A DNA stretch of 64,000 bases from Podarcis cretensis (taxonomy: Eukaryota). Position numbers and translations under genes: made by a program. Each line of letters starts with the position of its first letter. Positions within the stretch are counted from its first letter, which is position 1. The notes under the pieces were generated by a model. It was not told the origin of the DNA, searched no databases, and saw only the letters and a list, made by a program, of their open reading frames with translations. Location of the stretch: positions 118,358,001 to 118,422,000 of the forward strand of contig OX638149.1 in the NCBI GenBank assembly GCA_951804945.1, written 5' to 3'. Below, piece after piece: positions 1 through 59,350 of the stretch.

Positions 1-250
1 AGTGTACAGCTTCCGGGTCATGTGGCCAGCATGACTAAGCCACTTCTGGCGAACCAGAGCAGCGCACAGAAACGCCATTTACCTTCCCGCCAGAGTGGTA
101 CCTACTTATCTACTTGTACTTTGACGTGCTAGGTTAGCAGGAGCTGGGACCGAGCAAGGGGAGCTCACCCCCTCACAGGTATTCGAACCACCGACCTTCT
201 GAGTGGCAAGTCCTAGGCTCTGTGGTTTAACCCACAGCCACCCGCGTCCC
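1..250 (-). mobile_element. Sauria (POM-type) SINE, 3' end outside the window
   Basis: Reverse complement of the 3541 element; tRNA-like head GGGACGCGGGTGG...GGTTCGAAT. Confidence 0.9.
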
Positions 251-260
251 AGCCAAGAGA

Positions 261-414
261 TTAGTAGGTGCATATTAGAAGGCGCGTTGGTTTCTCCCTG
301 GCTCCTCCTGGCCGTGCTTTCTGGCTGAATCCCATCTGGCCCCGGACGCGAGCGGGAGGAGGAGGAGGGGCTGCTGTCGAGTGAAAAGTGCACACACGGA
401 GTGATTGATGAACT
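261..414 (-). pseudogene. Putative HoxD2 exon-1 relic (frameshifted, premature stop)
   Basis: Minus strand AGT TCA TCA ATC (SSSI), then after a 1-nt frameshift HSTAAPPPPPARVRGQMGFSQKARPGGAREKPTR... ending in TAA at 263-261. This is colinear with HOXA2 exon 1 as recalled ([44 protein letters not shown]). Position 3' of HOXD3 and strand match a paralog-group-2 locus. Confidence 0.7.
402..409 (+). promoter_or_regulatory. Pbx/Hox bipartite site TGATTGAT inside the Hox2 relic
   Basis: Perfect TGATTGAT(G) consensus coinciding with the SSSI codons; HOXA2 exon 1 is known to contain a conserved Hox-Pbx response element. Confidence 0.6.
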
Positions 415-594
415 CTTCATAGAACTAAAAAAAAATTTTTTTTTAAATCCGCCCCGTCGGCCCTCCTGTCTCACCGCGACTGCCCTGCTCCCAGCAGTAA
501 GGAAGAACACGCAGCCTTCCTTCCTTCCCCACTGGAAAACGCGGCTTCCCTTGGTGAATAACCAAGGAAGAGATTTGTTGCTTGTTGGCGATCA

Positions 595-725
595 ACTTAC
601 CATTCAGTCTCTCTCCTGATGAAAGTAGCTGAGGCCCCCAAAGTAGCGGAGACCTGGCTGAGCTCTCGCGCCTTTCCAGAGGCGGCGCTGGGTTAATGAT
701 TGAGCGCAGTGCCTGCCACGTGGTC
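595..725 (-). promoter_or_regulatory. Hox-type promoter module with splice donor upstream of the Hox2 relic
   Basis: E-box CACGTG 717-722, TCAATCATTAACC homeodomain/Pbx-like motif about 691-703, CpG-rich context, consensus donor ATG|GTAAGT at 601/600. Confidence 0.5.
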
Positions 726-1225
726 GCACAAAGAGGCTCCGCCAACTCGTCTCGGGCCACGCAGTGAAGCGAGAGTGGAAAGAGCGAATATCCCCCCCCC
801 CCAAACCCCGCACTCTTGCGCGCTATTGTTTGGTTTCAGGCTCCGGAGCTCTGGGATTGCGCGAGGAGGAGACTCTTTCCAAGAGTGCGCCTGGCCTGGT
901 GTTGTTGCTGGCAAACGTTTGCCATTCCAAGCCAGAACCTTCTTGATTTATTTATTTTTTAAACCATTGTGCTGTGTGTGGTTAGGGGGCGTTGTTTGGT
1001 TTTTGGAAGGAAGCTGGTTTCTGCGCCTTGGAAGGCAAAACGGAGCCTGGTGAAAGACGTCGGGGGCTTCCTTTTCTCAAGCTGCAATGTTTCTGACGGT
1101 GTGGTTTGGATGAGGCGACTGCAACTGCCACCCTAATCGTGGACTGTTGTATATAAGAAAAAGCAGCCTGAACCGGTTTATTGTGGCACAAACTTTGTGT
1201 GCCACAAAAAAATCTGCTTTCCAAG

Positions 1226-1418
1226 CACAGAAGCCAACTCGCAAGGGCCGAGGTCCCTTTGCCCCCCTAAAATATTTGAGGGGTTCTCCTCTCCCCAAAA
1301 GTTGATGGACACTGCCATTCAAATGCTGTGTGCGCCCCATGTCATGTGATACATTATGTGGGGCAGGGCTTACCTGAGGGACCCCCCCCCCAATATTTTA
1401 TTCAAGTTGGCACCGCTG
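1226..1418 (+). mobile_element. Non-autonomous hAT element, family A
   Basis: Ends CACAGAAGCCAAC...GTTGGCACCGCTG; 8-bp TSD tttccaag/cttccaag. Confidence 0.8.
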
Positions 1419-1789
1419 CTTCCAAGGGTCAGAAGGGTAGTTCTGCCACAACGCTCTAGCGTAGCGCTCTAGAAAAGAATTTTAGTTGTAGCAGGAAGCG
1501 CGGAAGACCAGTGAAGTAGCCTAACTCTGCACAAGGCCTTTATTTCTTCTCTGCACAGTACTGTAGCCTCTTCTCCTTCTGTCACACCACAGACCCGCAC
1601 GACAGGGTTTTAAATGAATGGATCTGGGATCCAGAGCTCTTTTGGTTCGTATAGCAAGCTGACTCTGTTTTGCATTAATTGTATTAATTTGCAAATAAAA
1701 TGTATAATTTGTATAACTGGGTTAAAAAATGGAAAATCAATAAAGAATAATTGGCAAAAAAGAGAGAGTTTTTCCTAGTCTACGTACCT

Positions 1790-1976
1790 CAGTGGTGTCC
1801 AAACTTTTTCACAGAGGGCCAGATTTGATGAAGTGAATGGCCGACCAAAGGGCCAACCAAAGTTGCTGAGGTTTTTTTTTAAGGATTTAACCCCAGGTAA
1901 TAAACTGCCATAGGGACCGGATTAAACCGACCAGCGGGCCGGATTAGGCCCCCGAAACGGACTTTGGACATGCCTG
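1790..1976. mobile_element. hAT MITE, family B
   Basis: TIRs CAGTGGTGTCCAAA / TTTGGACATGCCTG; TSD acgtacct/acgtagct. Confidence 0.8.
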
Positions 1977-2259
1977 ACGTAGCTGATCCGGATTGGGACC
2001 GGATGGGTGGATTTCCATCTCCTGACATTAAGTGATGTTGTGGTGCCCCTGATCAAAGGCATCTTGGCACCGATGGCTTTGCCCCACCCAAAGCACTAGA
2101 CAATGGTCCTCTCTGTGCTCATTAATCACCACCACTTCATGACCACAGGAGTCCAGGACAGAATCCCCACGTGACGAGGCCCCAATGATTGGCTGAAAGG
2201 GCGGATGAGGAGGTGATGGAATCCATCTATTTACCACCCTGATTGAGAGTACACCCGGG

Positions 2260-2434
2260 CAGAGGTGCCAACTTGAATAAAATATGGGGGAGAGGGCAGG
2301 TAAGCCCTGCCCCGCATCATCGATCACAAGATGCTCGGGCCCTATTTGAATGTCCATCAACTTTGGGGGGGCCACCCTCAAATATTTATTGGGGGGCCCG
2401 AAGGTACCTCAGCCCCTAGGAGTTGGTTCGTATG
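2260..2434 (-). mobile_element. Non-autonomous hAT element, family A (inverted copy)
   Basis: CAGAGGTGCCAAC...GTTGGTTCGTATG; 8-bp TSD cacccggg/cacctggg. Confidence 0.8.
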
Positions 2435-3540
2435 CACCTGGGTGCGCACCGTGCACATGATTTAGTATACGCGCGAAGGCTGGAGCAGCGCGTAATCGTG
2501 GTCTTGCGCTGTAGAGTTTGGGAGTGGGGTGGGTGGGTTCGGTTTCCACGTTCTGCAGAATGGAACGCTGAAATCTAACAGCCAAGTTTTGTCCTGGACT
2601 ACACCACACCGGGGAGGAGGCATTCTTCAAGCATGCATTCAGAAGAGTGCGGGAATAAAATAAAACAGACCCCATCTGCAACCTGAAGTAGTGCAGCCTA
2701 GGAAAAGTTTTACCTCTGCGCGGAAAATGGAAACAAATAAAATGCCTCGCATTCCTCATTACCGAAGAAGCCCCGCTTAGAAAAAAATCATTCACTTGGA
2801 GGATTTAAATACGCGCGCGCGCAATTAGACTCTTTCCTCCCCCCGCTCCGCCTACGTAAATAACTTTATAGGAAGGGTTACAAGTATTTACACATCCAGC
2901 CCTTTCAGCTTTGACTGAAGCTCTTTGGCACAGCCCAAATGAATGCAGTTCAAAGAGTCCTTGGCAAAGGCAGCCTTCCTTCCAAGAAGCTAAAAAAAAC
3001 AACAACTACTGTGCTAACTGACTTGGCATTTATTTTCTCTTGTTATTTTCTCCCCATTTGCTCGAATGTGCCGTGCCCTTCCCTCCTGCAACCTCCTAGC
3101 CCCTGCCAAAAATCCCCAGCGGTCCAGCTTAGCTCCACAGACTTTCCAGGACAGAAAAGAATAGAAGGCAGCTGGCAAGCTAGAGACCCTGCACACAGCA
3201 GAGAGACGGGCGAGGGCAAAGGGGGCTGGGCTGGGGGTTAGCACTGGAAGTCTGGACTAGGCGGTTGAGGTTGACTCCGACCTGAACACAGGCCCCTGTC
3301 AGTGCCACCAGTGGGACTTAACTTCCAAGGAACGTGCTCAGGATGGGTGATATCAGTTCCCCGTCCCCACCATTTCGAAACACACTTCTGGGTGGGAACT
3401 AGTCAGGGGGAAGCACTTTGGCACCTATATCCTATGCCTGAGTGGGCGTCAAGTAACTTCGACACAGAGCAGACCCACTGAAATAAATTTACTCAGGTTA
3501 GCCATGTGCATTTTTTTCCATGGACCTAACATTGGATACA

Positions 3541-3901
3541 GGGACGCGGGTGGCGCTGTGGGTTAAACCACAGAGCCTAGGACTTGCCGATCAGAAGGTC
3601 GGAGGTTCGAATCCCGCCACAGGGTGAGCTCCTGTTGCTCTGTCCCTGCTCCTGTCCACCTAGCAGTTCGAAAGCATGTCAAAGTGCAAGTAGATAAATA
3701 GGTATCTCTCCGGCGGGAAGGTAAAGGGCGTTTCCGTGCGCTGCTCTGGTTCGCCAGAAGCGGCTTAGTCATGCTGGCCCCATGACCCGGAAAAACTGTC
3801 TGTGGACAAACGCCGGCTTCCTCGGCCAATAAAGCGAGATGAGCCCCGCAACCCCAGAGTCGGTCAGGACTGGACCTAATGGTCGGGGGTCCCTTTATCT
3901 T
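3541..3901 (+). mobile_element. Full-length Sauria (POM-type) SINE with 14-bp TSD
   Basis: A/B boxes (TGGCGCTGTGG, GGTTCGAATCC), CCTTTA-type tail, and perfect TSD TAACATTGGATACA at 3527-3540 and 3902-3915. Confidence 0.93.
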
Positions 3902-4323
3902 TAACATTGGATACAACCTCCTGAGTTCAAGTGAGCCGCTTTCTCTATAGCTCACCATGTCGTGACGTTTGGGTTGGTCCTAACAGACGCAAAGATTTTG
4001 GAATTATTGTCAAGCAAAAGGCTGCTGCTTTTACGTGTTGGTTGTTGAACTCAATTGAATTCTAAATCTCTTGGGGTGGGTCGTTTTCAATCACTCTGCT
4101 CAGCCCCATTGCCTTTGGTGGAACTCTCCCACGAGAGGTATGTGACGATTGGGTGCCAAACCACCAAGGCTTCGATGCTAAGTACTGTACGCTTACTTGG
4201 CAATAGGTCATATGATAAGGGACTCCGGTGGGACTGCTTCTGAGTAACTAGGCGTAAGATCAGGTTGTAGCAGCCAGAATGCTACAATGCTGAACGGAAC
4301 TGAAAACCACCCTGCGCTTATAT

Positions 4324-4476
4324 CCTGTGGCTCAATGGGGTAGTGCGTCTGGCTGCTAACCAGAAGGTTAGCGGTTCGAGTCCACCTAGTTATGGCTGTG
4401 GGCAGGATTCGTCCTATTGTACAAGGAATTGAACTAGATGAACCTCAGGGTTCCATTCAACTCTATGACTCTATGT
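4324..4476 (+). mobile_element. tRNA-head, CR1-tail SINE (Squam3-like)
   Basis: GTGGCTCAATGG...GGTTCGAGTCC head and CTAGATGA...CAACTCTATGACTCTATG tail. Confidence 0.7.
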
Positions 4477-4552
4477 TTCCCTGTCCCAAGCAAACTGAGT
4501 ACTCTCCGATCCTATTTCTGACCTTTACTTTTGTGTTTAAGGTAGGATGTTA

Positions 4553-4794
4553 CATTGGTACCTCGGGTTACATACGCTTCAGCTTACATACGCTTCAGGT
4601 TACACACTCCGCTAACCCAGAAATAGTGCTTCAGGTTAAGAACTTTGCTTCAGGGTGAGAACAGAAATCGTGCTCCGGCGGTGCGGCGGCAGCAGGAGGC
4701 CCCCTTAGCTAAAGTGGTGCTTCAGGTTAAGAACAGTTTCAGGTTAAGAACGGACCTCCGGAACGAATTAAGTACTTAACCCGAGGTAGCACTG
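4553..4794 (+). mobile_element. Tc1/mariner-superfamily (Tigger-like) MITE
   Basis: TA-flanked TIRs CATTGGTACCTCGGGTTA / TAACCCGAGGTAGCACTG; internal TTCAGGTTA repeats. Confidence 0.85.
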
Positions 4795-5654
4795 TACTTG
4801 GGTTCCACCAATTCTAGTGAAGCATCCTTCTACATAATTGCGGTGTGTGTTTTTTTAAAAAAATAAAAATATGGGTGTCTCCTACCCGCATGTAGTGCAC
4901 ATGTGTCTACGTCCTAATGCCTCAAAATAAGTGCTATTTTGAGAAGGGAATTTAATGAATATAGATGTTTCTACTGATTAAAGGACCACGGAGGGGCATT
5001 CATTACTGGGGACGTTGTCTTAAACGTGAATTGGGGGTGATATATGTCACTTGTATTTTGAATCAATAGAAACGTTATAATTTGTTTCCTTGCCTGTTTA
5101 TTTTTATTGCCGGGGCAGCATCAAGAGATTTATTAGAAAGCTGAGAACTACCCTCACAGCACTTGCACGTGGAAAAAAATTCCAGAAAGGAGTCCACATT
5201 TAATCTGCAGATGGACCAGTGGTCATTTGCATGCAACTAATTATTATTCCCAGTGCTAATCAAGACAGCGTTTAGAAATAATATTACTGGTGTAAACACC
5301 CTTGTGAACCCTTTACAGAAAACCGATTTTAGCTGCAAATAATGAATTTGGTTCGGTAATGTAAAGTATGAAGACTCCTGTCAAAACCCCATTATATGCC
5401 ACTAATTTTTTCCCAAAGTTGCCTGGCTGCGAACTAGCGAACTTCGAACTAGCCCTGAGTCCAGTGAGTGATATTCCGATCCAGGCCAACTTTGCTTTGA
5501 AGTATATCCCCTAGATTTTAGTAAAACTGACTTGCAGGTTTTGGATCGCGATGTCAATCATCTTAAACGACACGGCGATACTTCAGTTTATCTCCGCGGT
5601 GGATCGGAGCGGGTTTTAAAAGGCTCATTTCTCAAGCCGCCTTTCTTTCCAAGA

Positions 5655-5800
5655 GGTCGGCCACGTGACTAGCTGAATAAATTCTGGAAAAGCTGAGGAG
5701 ACGCTGCAGAGTCTATTTAAGCAGAGCTATTTTACAAATGGGAGCAAATAAAGCCGCACATTCGGTTACCATTGCAATTGATGTGAAATTTCAGAAAGGC
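5655..5800 (+). promoter_or_regulatory. Conserved-looking element or possible antisense promoter 3' of HOXD3
   Basis: GGCCACGTGAC (5662-5667) followed by TATTTAA (5714-5720) on the plus strand in a CpG-enriched patch. Confidence 0.4.
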
Positions 5801-8800
5801 TTATATACACCTTCGTTCGTAAACGGATGGCGTGATCTGCGTCTCGATCATTCATCCTTCCTAACTGAACACGCTGCCACTTACTCCCTGAGTAAACATG
5901 CATAAGATTGCGCTGCAATTTATTTATTATGCTAGAAATCGAAGAAATATCCAGCTATCTTCCTGCGCAGCCCCGACCCCTATATCTGTTTATCCTGCTA
6001 TGTTCACATTTACTTGGGAGTAAGCCCCAGTGAAAACAGGGGGCTTGCTTCTGACTAAACATGTACAGTATAGGATAGGAGAGCCTCGAATTACCTGAAA
6101 CCAAAGGGGGAAGAGGGCTTAAATTTGACTGGATTGCACCCAGTAATAGAATCCCTGCTTTAAGGGATTTTAACGTCCTCATTCACACCCACCCGCTCCA
6201 AAAGACATTGGGAAGAAGAAGCATTCTAAAGGCAGGATCCTCTCCAGCACTCCTCCTCCTCCTGGGTTTCATGCTAGTTAGGTGCTACTCAAGCCGAATC
6301 GGCGGATCCTGTGTATTTGACAAGGAAGGAAGCCTAGCGGAGTCCAATAGGACTTCATCCTAAGGAAGCGTTCGCCGGAGTGCAGCCTTCCATGAATCAG
6401 AAAGGAGTACTAATCAGCCTTGGCAAGTATCTGAAATGCTTTGTAGAACCCAAACCTAGGCATGTACACTCAGAATTAAGACCTACTGGGTTCAGGAAGC
6501 CTTACTCTAGAGTAAGTACACAAAGGCAGGAAATACACGGTCTATGCATGTATACTCACTGGGTTCAATGCGGCTTACTGCTAGAACAGTGTGAACAGGA
6601 CAATGCACGCTTAGACTCAGGAGTAAGCAAGTATATAGGACTGGAGCCTAAGGCTCTCTTCTGGTCGCGTCTTGGCTACTTCAGCCCTGTAGTGCGCACT
6701 ATCTTCTGGAGGGCAAAGAGAAGGGAGAGCTGCCTTATGTGTGTTTTAAGTTCTTTTCACCGGCGGCTCCTTTCTTTTATTTTTATATTTTAAAGATCCT
6801 CCATACCACAAAGGGAGGCCTCCTAGTCTAACGTCTAAATGCTACGCCGCAAATAAACCGTGCGCGCTTTTGTGCCTTGCAAGCGGACCTTCTAAACCGA
6901 AGAGGCGCCTCTTTGCTTTGTTCCTTGGCGACCTCTGCATTATTATTCCTGTGCAAAAATGGCTACCAGGCCCCTTTGTTTGCACACAGCTCTGTTACAG
7001 TTGGAGAGGGAGAGAGGGAGGGGAGGGGGAAGGAGCCAACGAGAGAAGGCAGGCAGGCAGGCAGGCGGGCAGCCTCTATGCAGCGGGTAGGCTGCTGTAG
7101 CATCCACGTCGCCTTGCAAATACCTTCAGCAAAGCGTATCCCCCACTGACCCCGTCGAGTGGTGTCCTATCCGACGGACGTTGCTTAGCTACAGGGTTTA
7201 CTCCAAGCCAATGAGGAAGGAGACCCGGGAAAGATGCAGCGCCTCGTTTCTTTACCTAAGTGTGGGAGTATCAAAGCCCGTCAAAGCACAGGAGGAAGAC
7301 CAGGGAACGGGCTGAAGGCCCCTCTCCTCCCATTCGGAGGGGCTGATACCTGCGAATAAAAATGGGGAGCTAAATCTAGTCTAAATGTTTGCTCCTCGCT
7401 CTGCCTTCCTCCCCTGCTTAGAACAGCCGGAGCCCTGGAATCGCCTCCGAATCGACGGGCAGGAGGCTACTACGGATCCGTGTTGGCTGCTCCTTGGGTG
7501 TCAAAACATTAGGTTCAGTCCCATGCCCGCTTCTTTCCCGGGAGTAAGTACCACGAAATGGTACTCAAGGAGGGTGGGGGTGGATGCCCTTCTGAAGGGA
7601 ATGAAGAGGAAAACAAATGGTGACTTATGTGACTTGGTGACTTATGGGGCCGATGCTAAGCAAGTTCACTTAGAAGTCAACCCAGCTGACTTCACCCAAT
7701 ATTACTTTCCAGAAGGGTCTCTTAGGATTGCACCCCTAAAGAGAGAACTGGGGTTGTGGGGGGCATGTGCCTCTGATTCTCAGGCTCTCTCGCGCACACA
7801 TTCACACCCACGCGGATCTTCCCTTGTCGCCCTAGCTTCTTTCTGCCCACATGCAATACCACAATAAGCCACAATCGAGTTTACCACTTTGGGTTGCAGT
7901 GTGTAAGTCTGAATTAAAAGCGAAGGCGTGCTACGCAATAAAATTAAGGGCAAAAGAGGAAGACTATTTCAAAATTTAGACTTTGTTTCCCCTTAAGAAG
8001 GGAGAAGGGAGTTTGTTAGGGTAGCCTCGTTCCTATTTTTCTTTCTTTTCACCTTAACCATTGAAAAAATGGGAGGGGGATAATGTTGGCGTCCTCCAAA
8101 AGCACATTTTTGGCTTTGGCCAGGAATCTGGCGCAGCTAAAATGAAGATGAGTTACATTTAAAGGCAAGTCCCCGCAACCTTCCTCCTGATGTTCTTGAA
8201 AAGACATGGGCTTAGATGCTCCTGGGGAGAAGGACTGTTGACTCTTTGTAAAAGGGGTGCGGGGGGGGGGGGGAGAGAAATATTATTGGACCCGCTTACA
8301 GCACATTGTATTTGATTCAGATAACACCCCAGCAATTCAGGAAGCTAAACGGAGCAAGATTTATGTTAGGTGTGGAAACGGGTTGTATATCATTTATGAC
8401 GATCCGAAATGGGCGCGAAAGCCAAAGGGATGTTGTGCCAGAAACGTCTTTGAGCTTAAAGCAGAGCCATTAAAATCCGTGGGAGAGTTGCCATTGACTT
8501 CTATGAAGAGTCCCTCCTCTCCTCCATCTCTCTCTCTCGCTCGCTCTCGGGCACGGATCCCACAGCTGTTTACTTGGAAGTAAGCGCCAATTTAATCAAT
8601 GGGGCTTTCTGGCCAAGTAATTTGCTTAGCCTCGACGTGTTCCTCCGGGGCTGGCCTCCTGAGTCGGGGGGGGGGGCAGAAATAGAGCCAAGGGGAGACG
8701 TCGCTGCCCAGTACACTAATTGGGTTACGCTTTAAAGGGAGGCCTATGCCAATTCTAACAATATACTCCTACACAAGCCCTGAAATGTATGATTTCGAGA

Positions 8801-11527: not shown

Positions 11528-12276
11528 CTACAGATGCGTCAGTTTGGGCGCCTCCTGAATCCTTCCCTGAGTTGTGTGGTGAGAAGTGAGATCTGTGTAC
11601 GTGGGATGGGGGTCACAAGGTCCATGGTGATGGTTGCCTGGGATCTGAGCAGCGCAGCTGTAGTCCACGCTGGCAGATGAAGGATGGGAGAGGTGGCCGA
11701 TGTTGAACATGGGGCCAGAGGCTGGCATGGAATCAACGAAGTTCCCTCCGACATAGACGGGGCTGCCCTGCAAATTGGGGTTGGCGAAGCCGCCGTTGCT
11801 TTGCATGGCGTGATGGTCGTACTCGGCGCCTGGGTATCTCTTCTGTTGGGGCAAGCAGCTGCTGAGAGGCGCCGTGTAAGCCGCCAGCCCGTACATGTTT
11901 TGCTGCGATTTGGCAAAGGACGTCGGCGACGGGGCGTCGTAGCTCAAGCTGTTGACGGTGGGCAGCTGGCTGGAGTATCCTACATGGTTGGGCCCGCTCA
12001 AAGGCGGGCTCCGGTCTGGGGACTGCCCTACCGGGGAGTGCATAATTCCTTTCGCTTTTTGGTCTTTTTTGTACTTCATCCTCCGGTTCTGGAACCAGAT
12101 TTTGATCTGGCGCTCCGTCAGGTTCAGCAGGTTGGCCATCTCCACCCGGCGAGGGCGGCACAGATAGCGGTTGAAATGGAACTCCTTCTCCAGCTCCACT
12201 AGCTGCGCGCTGGTATAGGCGGTGCGCACCCGCTTGGAAGCGGGGCCCGGGGGGCTTTTGTCCTCGCAGTTCTCTC
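11528..12276 (-). CDS. HOXD3: Homeobox protein Hox-D3, coding exon 2 (homeodomain and C-terminus); spliced protein 438 aa
   Basis: Acceptor TTTTTGGACAG|GA at 12277/12276 restores frame ([44 protein letters not shown]). The PG3 homeodomain is followed by a D3-type tail ending QEAPKLTHL*. Confidence 0.98.
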
Positions 12277-15730: not shown

Positions 15731-16298
15731 CTGCGGGGGCGCAGCTGCTCTTCTGCTTGGAGTTCTGGCGGGACTCCTTCATCCACGGGAAGATCTGCTT
15801 GCTAATCGTGGCCGCCGAGCCGCCCGAGGCGTTGGCCCCGCCTTTGCCCTTTTTGGCGGGAACCGAGTGGGCGGGGTTGCTGCTGGGCGGCGAGGGCGAC
15901 GGCAGCGCGGGGGGCGGAGCCTGTTGCTGAGGCGGCGGTTGCTGCTGCTGCTGCTGCTGCTGCTGTTGCTCGGCTAGGCCCGGCGGCTGCTGAGGGCCTC
16001 CCTGGGCGCCTCCGGTGGGGCGCATGCAGCTACCGCTCAGCTCGGCGCTCTTGTGGGCCGGAGGCGCCCGGATGGCGGCGGCGGCGGCGGCTCCTTGGAG
16101 CGAGCAGGCCGAGCCTGCGTAGTCGGTGTCCAGGGCGGGCTGGGCGTAGGGCTGAGGAGGGCCCGGCGGGTAGCCGTAGGCGTCCGCTTTGCTGTAGCCG
16201 CCGTAGGCCCCGAAGAGGCCCGCGTTGTCGTAGTAGGCGGCCTTCTGCATGGTGGGCTCCGCCGTCGCCAAGGCCTCGGCAGCCCGCTCAAATAACAT
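15731..16298 (-). CDS. HOXD3: Homeobox protein Hox-D3, coding exon 1 (568 nt, phase-1 donor)
   Basis: Translation MLFE...[14 protein letters not shown]...[21 protein letters not shown] matches the HOXD3 N-terminus and FPWM hexapeptide. Donor GCAG|GTACCC at 15731/15730. Upstream acceptor TCTCTCTTTTCCAG|G at 16377/16376, with an in-frame TGA before the ATG. Confidence 0.97.
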
Positions 16299-39336: not shown

Positions 39337-39647
39337 CTACAAAGTTGTCAAGTCTGTCTGATGCTCCTTGGAGACAGTCTGTGAGTGTTGGCTGGGGGCC
39401 GAGGAAGAGCTAGAGGACCGGCCCTTGGTGTTGGGCAGTTTGTGGTCTTTTTTCCACTTCATCCTCCTGTTCTGGAACCAGATCTTGATCTGGCGTTCGG
39501 AGAGACACAACGTGTGGGCGATTTCGATCCGCCGGCGCCGAGTCAGGTACCGGTTGAAATGGAATTCCTTCTCCAGCTCGAGGACTTGCTGCCTCGTGTA
39601 GGCTGTCCTGGAGCGCTTCGGTTCTCCTCCGGTGTAATTAGGATTCA
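39337..39647 (-). CDS. HOXD4: Homeobox protein Hox-D4, coding exon 2 (homeodomain); spliced protein 246 aa
   Basis: Acceptor CTCAG|TG at 39648/39647. [53 protein letters not shown]...[11 protein letters not shown]...TDLTTL* is diagnostic of D4. Confidence 0.98.
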
Positions 39648-41886: not shown

Positions 41887-41990
41887 TGAAGTTTTTGCAT
41901 CGACCATATATTCCCCTAGAATCGAATCTGTGACTATGTAAACACCACACAAATTCGGTTCTACAGGGTATATATAGACAACGTAATAAC
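41887..41990 (-). ncRNA. MIR10B: pre-miR-10b hairpin (mature 5p 41970-41948; 3p 41931-41910)
   Basis: Minus strand has TACCCTGTAGAACCGAATTTGTG (miR-10b-5p) and ACAGATTCGATTCTAGGGGAAT (3p) as a foldback, at the canonical position upstream of Hox4. Confidence 0.98.
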
Positions 41991-59204: not shown

Positions 59205-59350
59205 NNNNNNNNNNNNNNNNNNNNNNNNNNNNNNNNNNNNNNNNNNNNNNNNNNNNNNNNNNNNNNNNNNNNNNNNNNNNNNNNNNNNNNNNNNNNNNNN
59301 NNNNNNNNNNNNNNNNNNNNNNNNNNNNNNNNNNNNNNNNNNNNNNNNNN
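59205..59350. other. Assembly gap (146 N)
   Basis: Run of N. Confidence 1.

Follow-up and report, generated by a model that had tools for sequence, protein, structure and literature searches.

Can a regulatory site persist in a Hox cluster after the exon that carried it has been lost? This question is raised by a short motif at positions 395-415 in the HoxD cluster of a lacertid lizard, for which the original prediction had proposed that it is the best-kept part of a HoxD2 exon-1 relic, held by selection after the protein was lost. According to reviews, HoxD2 is known only from cartilaginous fishes; bichir may have a copy, Pantodon retains a fragment as a pseudogene, and no other bony vertebrate examined has the gene. 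The loss is placed before the split of coelacanths and tetrapods, more than 400 million years ago, and with a loss that old only strong constraint could have preserved a trace. A literature search yielded no report of a HoxD2 remnant in tetrapods or of a pan-tetrapod conserved element at this place, and pipelines in which shark exons are masked could miss one. The retention of exonic remnants as cis-regulatory elements after the loss of a duplicate has been documented (Dong 2010, PMC2831330).

If the enhancer reading is true, regulation would account for part of the extreme conservation seen in Hox2 exon 1. The locus would then be a clear example of how an exon can become an enhancer within a Hox cluster, and a natural experiment separating regulatory from coding constraint in the ultraconserved element of Hox2 exon 1. 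The present evidence consists of one short exact match.

Position of the site in the HoxD cluster

The window, that is the whole stretch of 64 kb that was analysed, represents the HoxD cluster of a lizard (lacertid), in which the genes are read on the minus strand. Six-frame translation of the window revealed two homeoboxes only, both on the minus strand: that of HOXD3 near 12097 and that of HOXD4 near 39480, where the exon protein ends with ...TDLTTL. Exon 2 of HOXD3 (11528 to 12229, minus strand), translated from the homeobox to ...KLTHL and the stop codon at 11528-11530, served as anchor for locus and strand. A word search with HOXD3 exon 1 found Hox-D3 of Podarcis lilfordi with 97% identity, and the next best matches came from other squamates. 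Upstream of HOXD4 a mir-10 precursor is encoded on the minus strand (41903-41977, 75 bits), which is the mir-10b expected in a HoxD cluster.

The site at 395-415 is located 11.1 kb downstream of the HOXD3 stop codon, with the minus strand as gene strand, as for HOXD3 and HOXD4. Since it lies downstream of HOXD3, it falls into the interval toward HOXD1, where any gene of paralogue group 2 would sit. The hallmarks of a Hox2 gene are the N-terminal motif EFEREIGFIN, a hexapeptide and a homeobox; neither the motif nor a Hox2 homeobox was found in the window, and any downstream part of such a gene would fall outside it.

Some further observations concern the anchor genes and the assembly. HOXD3 exon 1 encodes, in the N-terminal arm (15900-16000, minus strand), a run of 11 glutamine residues followed by PPPQQQ. 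The HOXD3 exon-1 query also matched a gene model from Myotis brandtii (P0039), which carries the name Hox-D3 at NCBI but Hox-D1 in UniRef and contains the N-terminal Pfam domain PF23913 instead of PF13293. This model may be a chimeric annotation that spans the interval from D3 to D1. Positions 59205-59350 of the window consist of 146 N (an assembly gap or masked sequence).

The 13-mer and its identity to the Hoxa2 element

The predicted 13-mer with a perfect Pbx-Hox site is indeed present: TGATTGATGAACT is found on the plus strand at 402-414, as an exact match with a single occurrence in the window. Since the Hox genes lie on the minus strand, the 13-mer reads AGTTCATCAATCA on the gene strand, as it does in Hoxa2. 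Positions 402-411 comprise the complete decamer of the Hoxa2 HRE, TGATTGATGA, which is a bipartite Pbx-Hox consensus and unique in the 64 kb, and the bipartite core TGATNNAT(NN) at the site fits the consensus for rhombomere 4 (r4). The core of the EMSA oligo used for mouse Hoxa2, TTTCAAAGTTCATCAATCAAGACCTCG, is identical to the 13-mer of the window (Lampe 2008, PMC2425489). The same 13 letters are contained in a qPCR primer for mouse Hoxa2, GTCGAGGTCTTGATTGATGAACT, which is independent of the EMSA oligo.

The Hoxa2 HRE is located in exon 1, inside an ultraconserved element of 205 bp, and was defined by the mutation TGATTGATGA > TtATgctgct (Lampe 2008, PMC2425489). In the same study the HRE was required in a 1.25-kb fragment and was found to be necessary but not sufficient, the intronic sites PH1-3 being needed as well; the ultraconserved element by itself gave no expression in rhombomere 4 (Lampe 2008, PMC2425489). 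The statement that HOXA2 exon 1 contains a Hox-Pbx element active in r4 is right, with the nuance that the ultraconserved element alone is inactive without PH1-3.

How far chance explains the match depends on the null that is applied. Shuffling of the window did not produce a match to the 13-mer in any of 100 shuffles. The octamer TGATTGAT is present twice in the window (3.03 expected), which is chance frequency, and TGATNNAT was counted 43 times with 36 expected. The decamer is mildly unusual, as it was observed once where 0.24 occurrences would be expected for the two strands of the 64 kb. Exact matches of 10 to 13 letters with the same interval were also found for the exons of HOXD3 and HOXD4, which are unrelated to it. 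When random genes with the composition of Hox exons were compared to the interval of 11.4 kb, at least one 13-mer was shared on the sense strand in 6.5% of the trials with 380 nt and in 16% of those with 1130 nt. A 13-mer located exactly on the Hox-Pbx element would be much rarer, with a probability of approximately 3e-4 for the interval and strand, a figure that is valid only if this location was predicted in advance. It was obtained from the 0.24 decamers expected per 128 kb by scaling to a single strand of 11.4 kb and dividing the result by 64. Since the first reading of the sequence had sought any likeness to HOXA2, the broader null is fairer. Judged from these counts, the true significance of the match is somewhere between about 3e-4 and 6-16%.

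Likeness to Hox2 exon 1 and sharing among relatives

The comparison with Hoxa2 covered 29 published nucleotides. The flanks of the 13-mer match these letters at about 2 of 6 positions on the 5' side and at 2 of 8-10 positions on the 3' side, which is the random level, and no match to the 29-mer was obtained in the window with up to three mismatches. Likewise, a degenerate motif for EFEREIGFIN, searched in all frames with up to three mismatches, left no trace near the site. In Hoxa2, the 100 nt upstream of the element code for the protein segment with the highest conservation (EFEREIGFIN) and belong to the best-conserved half of the ultraconserved element, whereas the corresponding upstream 100 nt here, read on the gene strand, consist of an A9T10 tract and GC-rich sequence.

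The open reading frame that runs through the site (109-510, minus strand) returned no Pfam family, and a word search with its non-SINE part (256-510, minus strand) returned no relatives. When the putative relic is read as frameshifted, the in-frame remainder is only 'SSSI'. A scan of metagenome contigs with a Hox2 27-mer gave no matches. The degenerate EFEREIGFIN pattern had a single match in these contigs, in contig L001, which is AT-rich and protist-like, and this match was dismissed as chance. Two more putative blocks would be collinear between HOXA2 and the window at matching spacing, CTTT(T)CAC..TCGACA and then a CCT repeat; other apparent matches still further on have mutually inconsistent spacing. 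The case for a descent of the stretch from HoxD2 exon 1 consists of the one 13-mer and these weaker, putative collinear similarities.

The motif is embedded in a single-copy, moderately CpG-rich stretch (251 to 421, minus strand), the putative HoxD2 exon-1 relic, which has no second copy in the window. Upstream on the gene strand, 11 nt from the motif, lies the A9T10 tract (426 to 445), a palindromic low-complexity sequence that is read from the letters and appears as a self-inverted BLAST match. It falls within the part that would correspond to the opening 100 nt of exon 1 in a Hox2 gene, and at this tract the contigs of related genomes either break (cut at 422-455) or vary in length. Approximately 150 nt downstream of the motif, again on the gene strand, the single-copy stretch is ended by a tRNA-derived SINE in gene orientation (1 to 250, minus strand), of which 11-250 are 84.6% identical to the inverted sequence at 3541-3792 (plus strand). 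The sequencing depth of the SINE is enormous in all four runs compared, and joints connect 4-7 with 3810-3812. Outside the SINE the depth corresponds to single-copy DNA in the bins analysed; the bin 201-400 is swamped by SINE copies.

Additional high-copy repeats are present at approximately 1200-2000, 2200-2600 and 4400-4800. Beside the last of these regions, positions 4321-4393 (plus strand) show a weak tRNA match of 30.9 bits, barely above the Rfam threshold, in which we see the probable head of a further tRNA-derived SINE rather than a tRNA gene.

To determine which organisms share the stretch, an index of sequencing runs was queried with positions 255-425, represented by 11 sampled 31-mers. 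At least one of these 31-mers is held by 20 runs, which come from 7 studies and 10 coded organisms; the share of words present ranges between 0.18 and 1.00. Since this list of holders is unsaturated, none of the sampled 31-mers occurs in any indexed run from an animal that is more distant. Among the 20 holders of words from 255-425 no RNA run is on record.

Four runs from four organisms were compared with the window over positions 1-6000. All four represent close relatives, the single-copy contigs being about 2.5-5.5% diverged from the window, and the retention of 31-mers (0.46-0.64) is about what neutral-like divergence gives. The contig of run X14 differs over 219-555 by 12 substitutions and 6 gap letters, i.e. 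by 3.6%, the same as in its flanks (about 3.5%). Of its words a share of 0.46 is intact, which is near the 0.3-0.4 expected from the divergence. Within 255-425 the sole listed change is 385 A>G, found in two runs. In X14 this is the one change listed in 256-421 and 456-555 together, compared to 11 listed in 596-1200 (Poisson p of about 0.05), so that the changes listed for X14 give a weak hint of a somewhat lower divergence in 256-555. The 13-mer is unchanged in every relative that covers it, an outcome expected about half the time under neutrality at 3-5% divergence. Long perfect identity among distant vertebrates, as in the ultraconservation of the Hoxa2 type, was not found at 255-425, where sharing is confined to close relatives in the runs indexed. 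As far as these comparisons reach, they do not point to constraint, and the stretch lacks the ultraconservation of the Hoxa2 element.

Regulatory surroundings and explanations of the motif

The Prep/Meis hexamer, searched as TGACAG and CTGTCA, is not present in 1-1500, i.e. within 1.1 kb of the site, and is found nearest at 1579. The next TGATNNAT is located at 944, 540 nt from the site. An Rfam search returned nothing at the site. The region 201-1000 has a CpG o/e of 0.69-0.79 and 54-56% G+C, compared to a CpG o/e of 0.53 for the whole window. This CpG level fits a hypomethylated island and would be unexceptional for a Hox cluster, which is CpG-rich throughout.

The Pbx-Hox decamer is real and perfect, and it is located in single-copy DNA outside genes, with HOXD3 on one side and the HOXD1 end of the cluster on the other. 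On the reading that we consider the most likely, it would have no specific role, and the site is not marked as a regulatory unit by cooperating sites, a transcript or conservation; TALE and Hox proteins may touch it as they touch thousands of such sites. The 13-mer would be a chance or unconstrained motif, its identity to Hoxa2 coincidental or at most a leftover, and no enhancer would have been selected. Whether this is so is, in our judgement, about an even call. Several observations count against it, namely the a priori chance of only about 3e-4 for the exact decamer with three more letters on the right strand and in the interval of a Hox2 gene, the putative collinear blocks, the hint from X14, the unchanged 13-mer and the CpG-island character of the region.

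A second explanation, which we regard as doubtful, is that of a living enhancer: a vestige of HoxD2 exon 1 whose Hox-Pbx element was retained by selection after the coding function was lost. Just as doubtful is what would go with it: Hox proteins of groups 1 and 2 would occupy the site jointly with Pbx (and Prep/Meis), and through it HOXD1, HOXD3 or else some non-coding RNA would be auto- or cross-regulated. Location, strand and exact decamer all agree with what this explanation predicts, and none of the results refutes it. The identity covers the decamer of the functionally tested Hoxa2 HRE and three further nucleotides, and the decamer is unique in 64 kb. The Hoxa2 HRE shows that exon 1 of a Hox2 gene can carry such a site (Lampe 2008, PMC2425489), and exonic remnants that act as enhancers provide a precedent (Dong 2010, PMC2831330). 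The unchanged motif in the covering relatives and the few changes in 256-555 of X14 point in the same direction. On the other side, the match is single, short and found post hoc, and the likeness to published Hoxa2 sequence stops at 13 nt. Neither a Meis/Prep site nor a second Pbx-Hox site is found nearby, and even the ultraconserved element of Hoxa2 gives no r4 expression alone and requires PH1-3. The indexed runs of distant organisms hold no sampled 31-mer, no holder is an RNA run, and the covering contig is as diverged as its flanks. The putative exon lacks its opening 100 nt, and there are repeats on both sides. Furthermore, selection over more than 400 million years ought to have left a block that is plainly conserved across tetrapods, and the literature search found none reported.

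With the Hoxa2 HRE (Lampe 2008, PMC2425489) the site shares the decamer TGATTGATGA plus three letters, the orientation and the group-2 position in the cluster. The Hoxa2 HRE, however, is part of an intact coding sequence with ultraconserved flanks on either side, and its function depends on the intronic PH1-3 and on Prep/Meis sites. In the window the flanks are unmatched, A9T10 lies in the upstream 100 nt, the site is followed by a SINE, partner sites were not found, and sharing is seen among close relatives only. The remnants described by Dong 2010 (PMC2831330), medaka psi-hoxa2b and Pantodon psi-hoxd2x (PMC4166920) represent the same concept, a fragment of a lost paralogue's exon that is kept in synteny and is regulatory. 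Their definition relied on two criteria, a significant alignment with the exon that survived and conservation between species, and they go back to younger (teleost) duplication and loss, whereas the window offers one match of 13 nt and a HoxD2 loss of more than 400 million years ago. The r4 elements (Hoxb1 ARE, Hoxb2 r4 enhancer and the intronic PH1-3 of Hoxa2) have the same TGATNNAT core but contain several Pbx-Hox sites, or one with a Prep/Meis site nearby; the site in the window is single and has none within 1.1 kb. That the 13-mer is a surviving HoxD2 exon-1 element, selected for more than 400 million years and now engaged in cross-regulation of HOXD1 or HOXD3, seems rather unlikely to us. 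The original prediction needs descent, selection and regulation, all three together; as a whole it is a plausible lead, with a chance or unconstrained motif as the most likely explanation.

A third explanation, which we consider unlikely, assumes a functional CpG-rich element of a different type at approximately 251-900, for example a Polycomb-bound island, or the place where an intergenic non-coding RNA begins (promoter or first exon). In that case, equally unlikely in our view, the decamer would be incidental or just one of many inputs, and any resemblance to Hox2 exon 1 would have no bearing on the present role. This explanation would be consistent with the CpG o/e and G+C values of 201-1000, which exceed the window mean, with the single-copy DNA between repeats, with the GGTAAGT donor near 598-607 and with the combination of CACGTG and CAATCATT at about 695-735; the holders of 255-425, which include no RNA run, the Rfam search, which gave no match, and an enrichment that is modest for a CpG-rich Hox cluster speak against it.

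The letters of this region include some further signals. The GGTAAGT donor, at about 598-607 on the gene strand, corresponds to the consensus. Two small modules on the gene strand, at 695-735 and 2165-2200, each combine a CACGTG E-box with CAATCATT, and the order of the two is reversed between the modules. The CAATCATT in these E-box modules is a near Pbx half-site, AATGATTG, and the first module lies inside the CpG-rich stretch.
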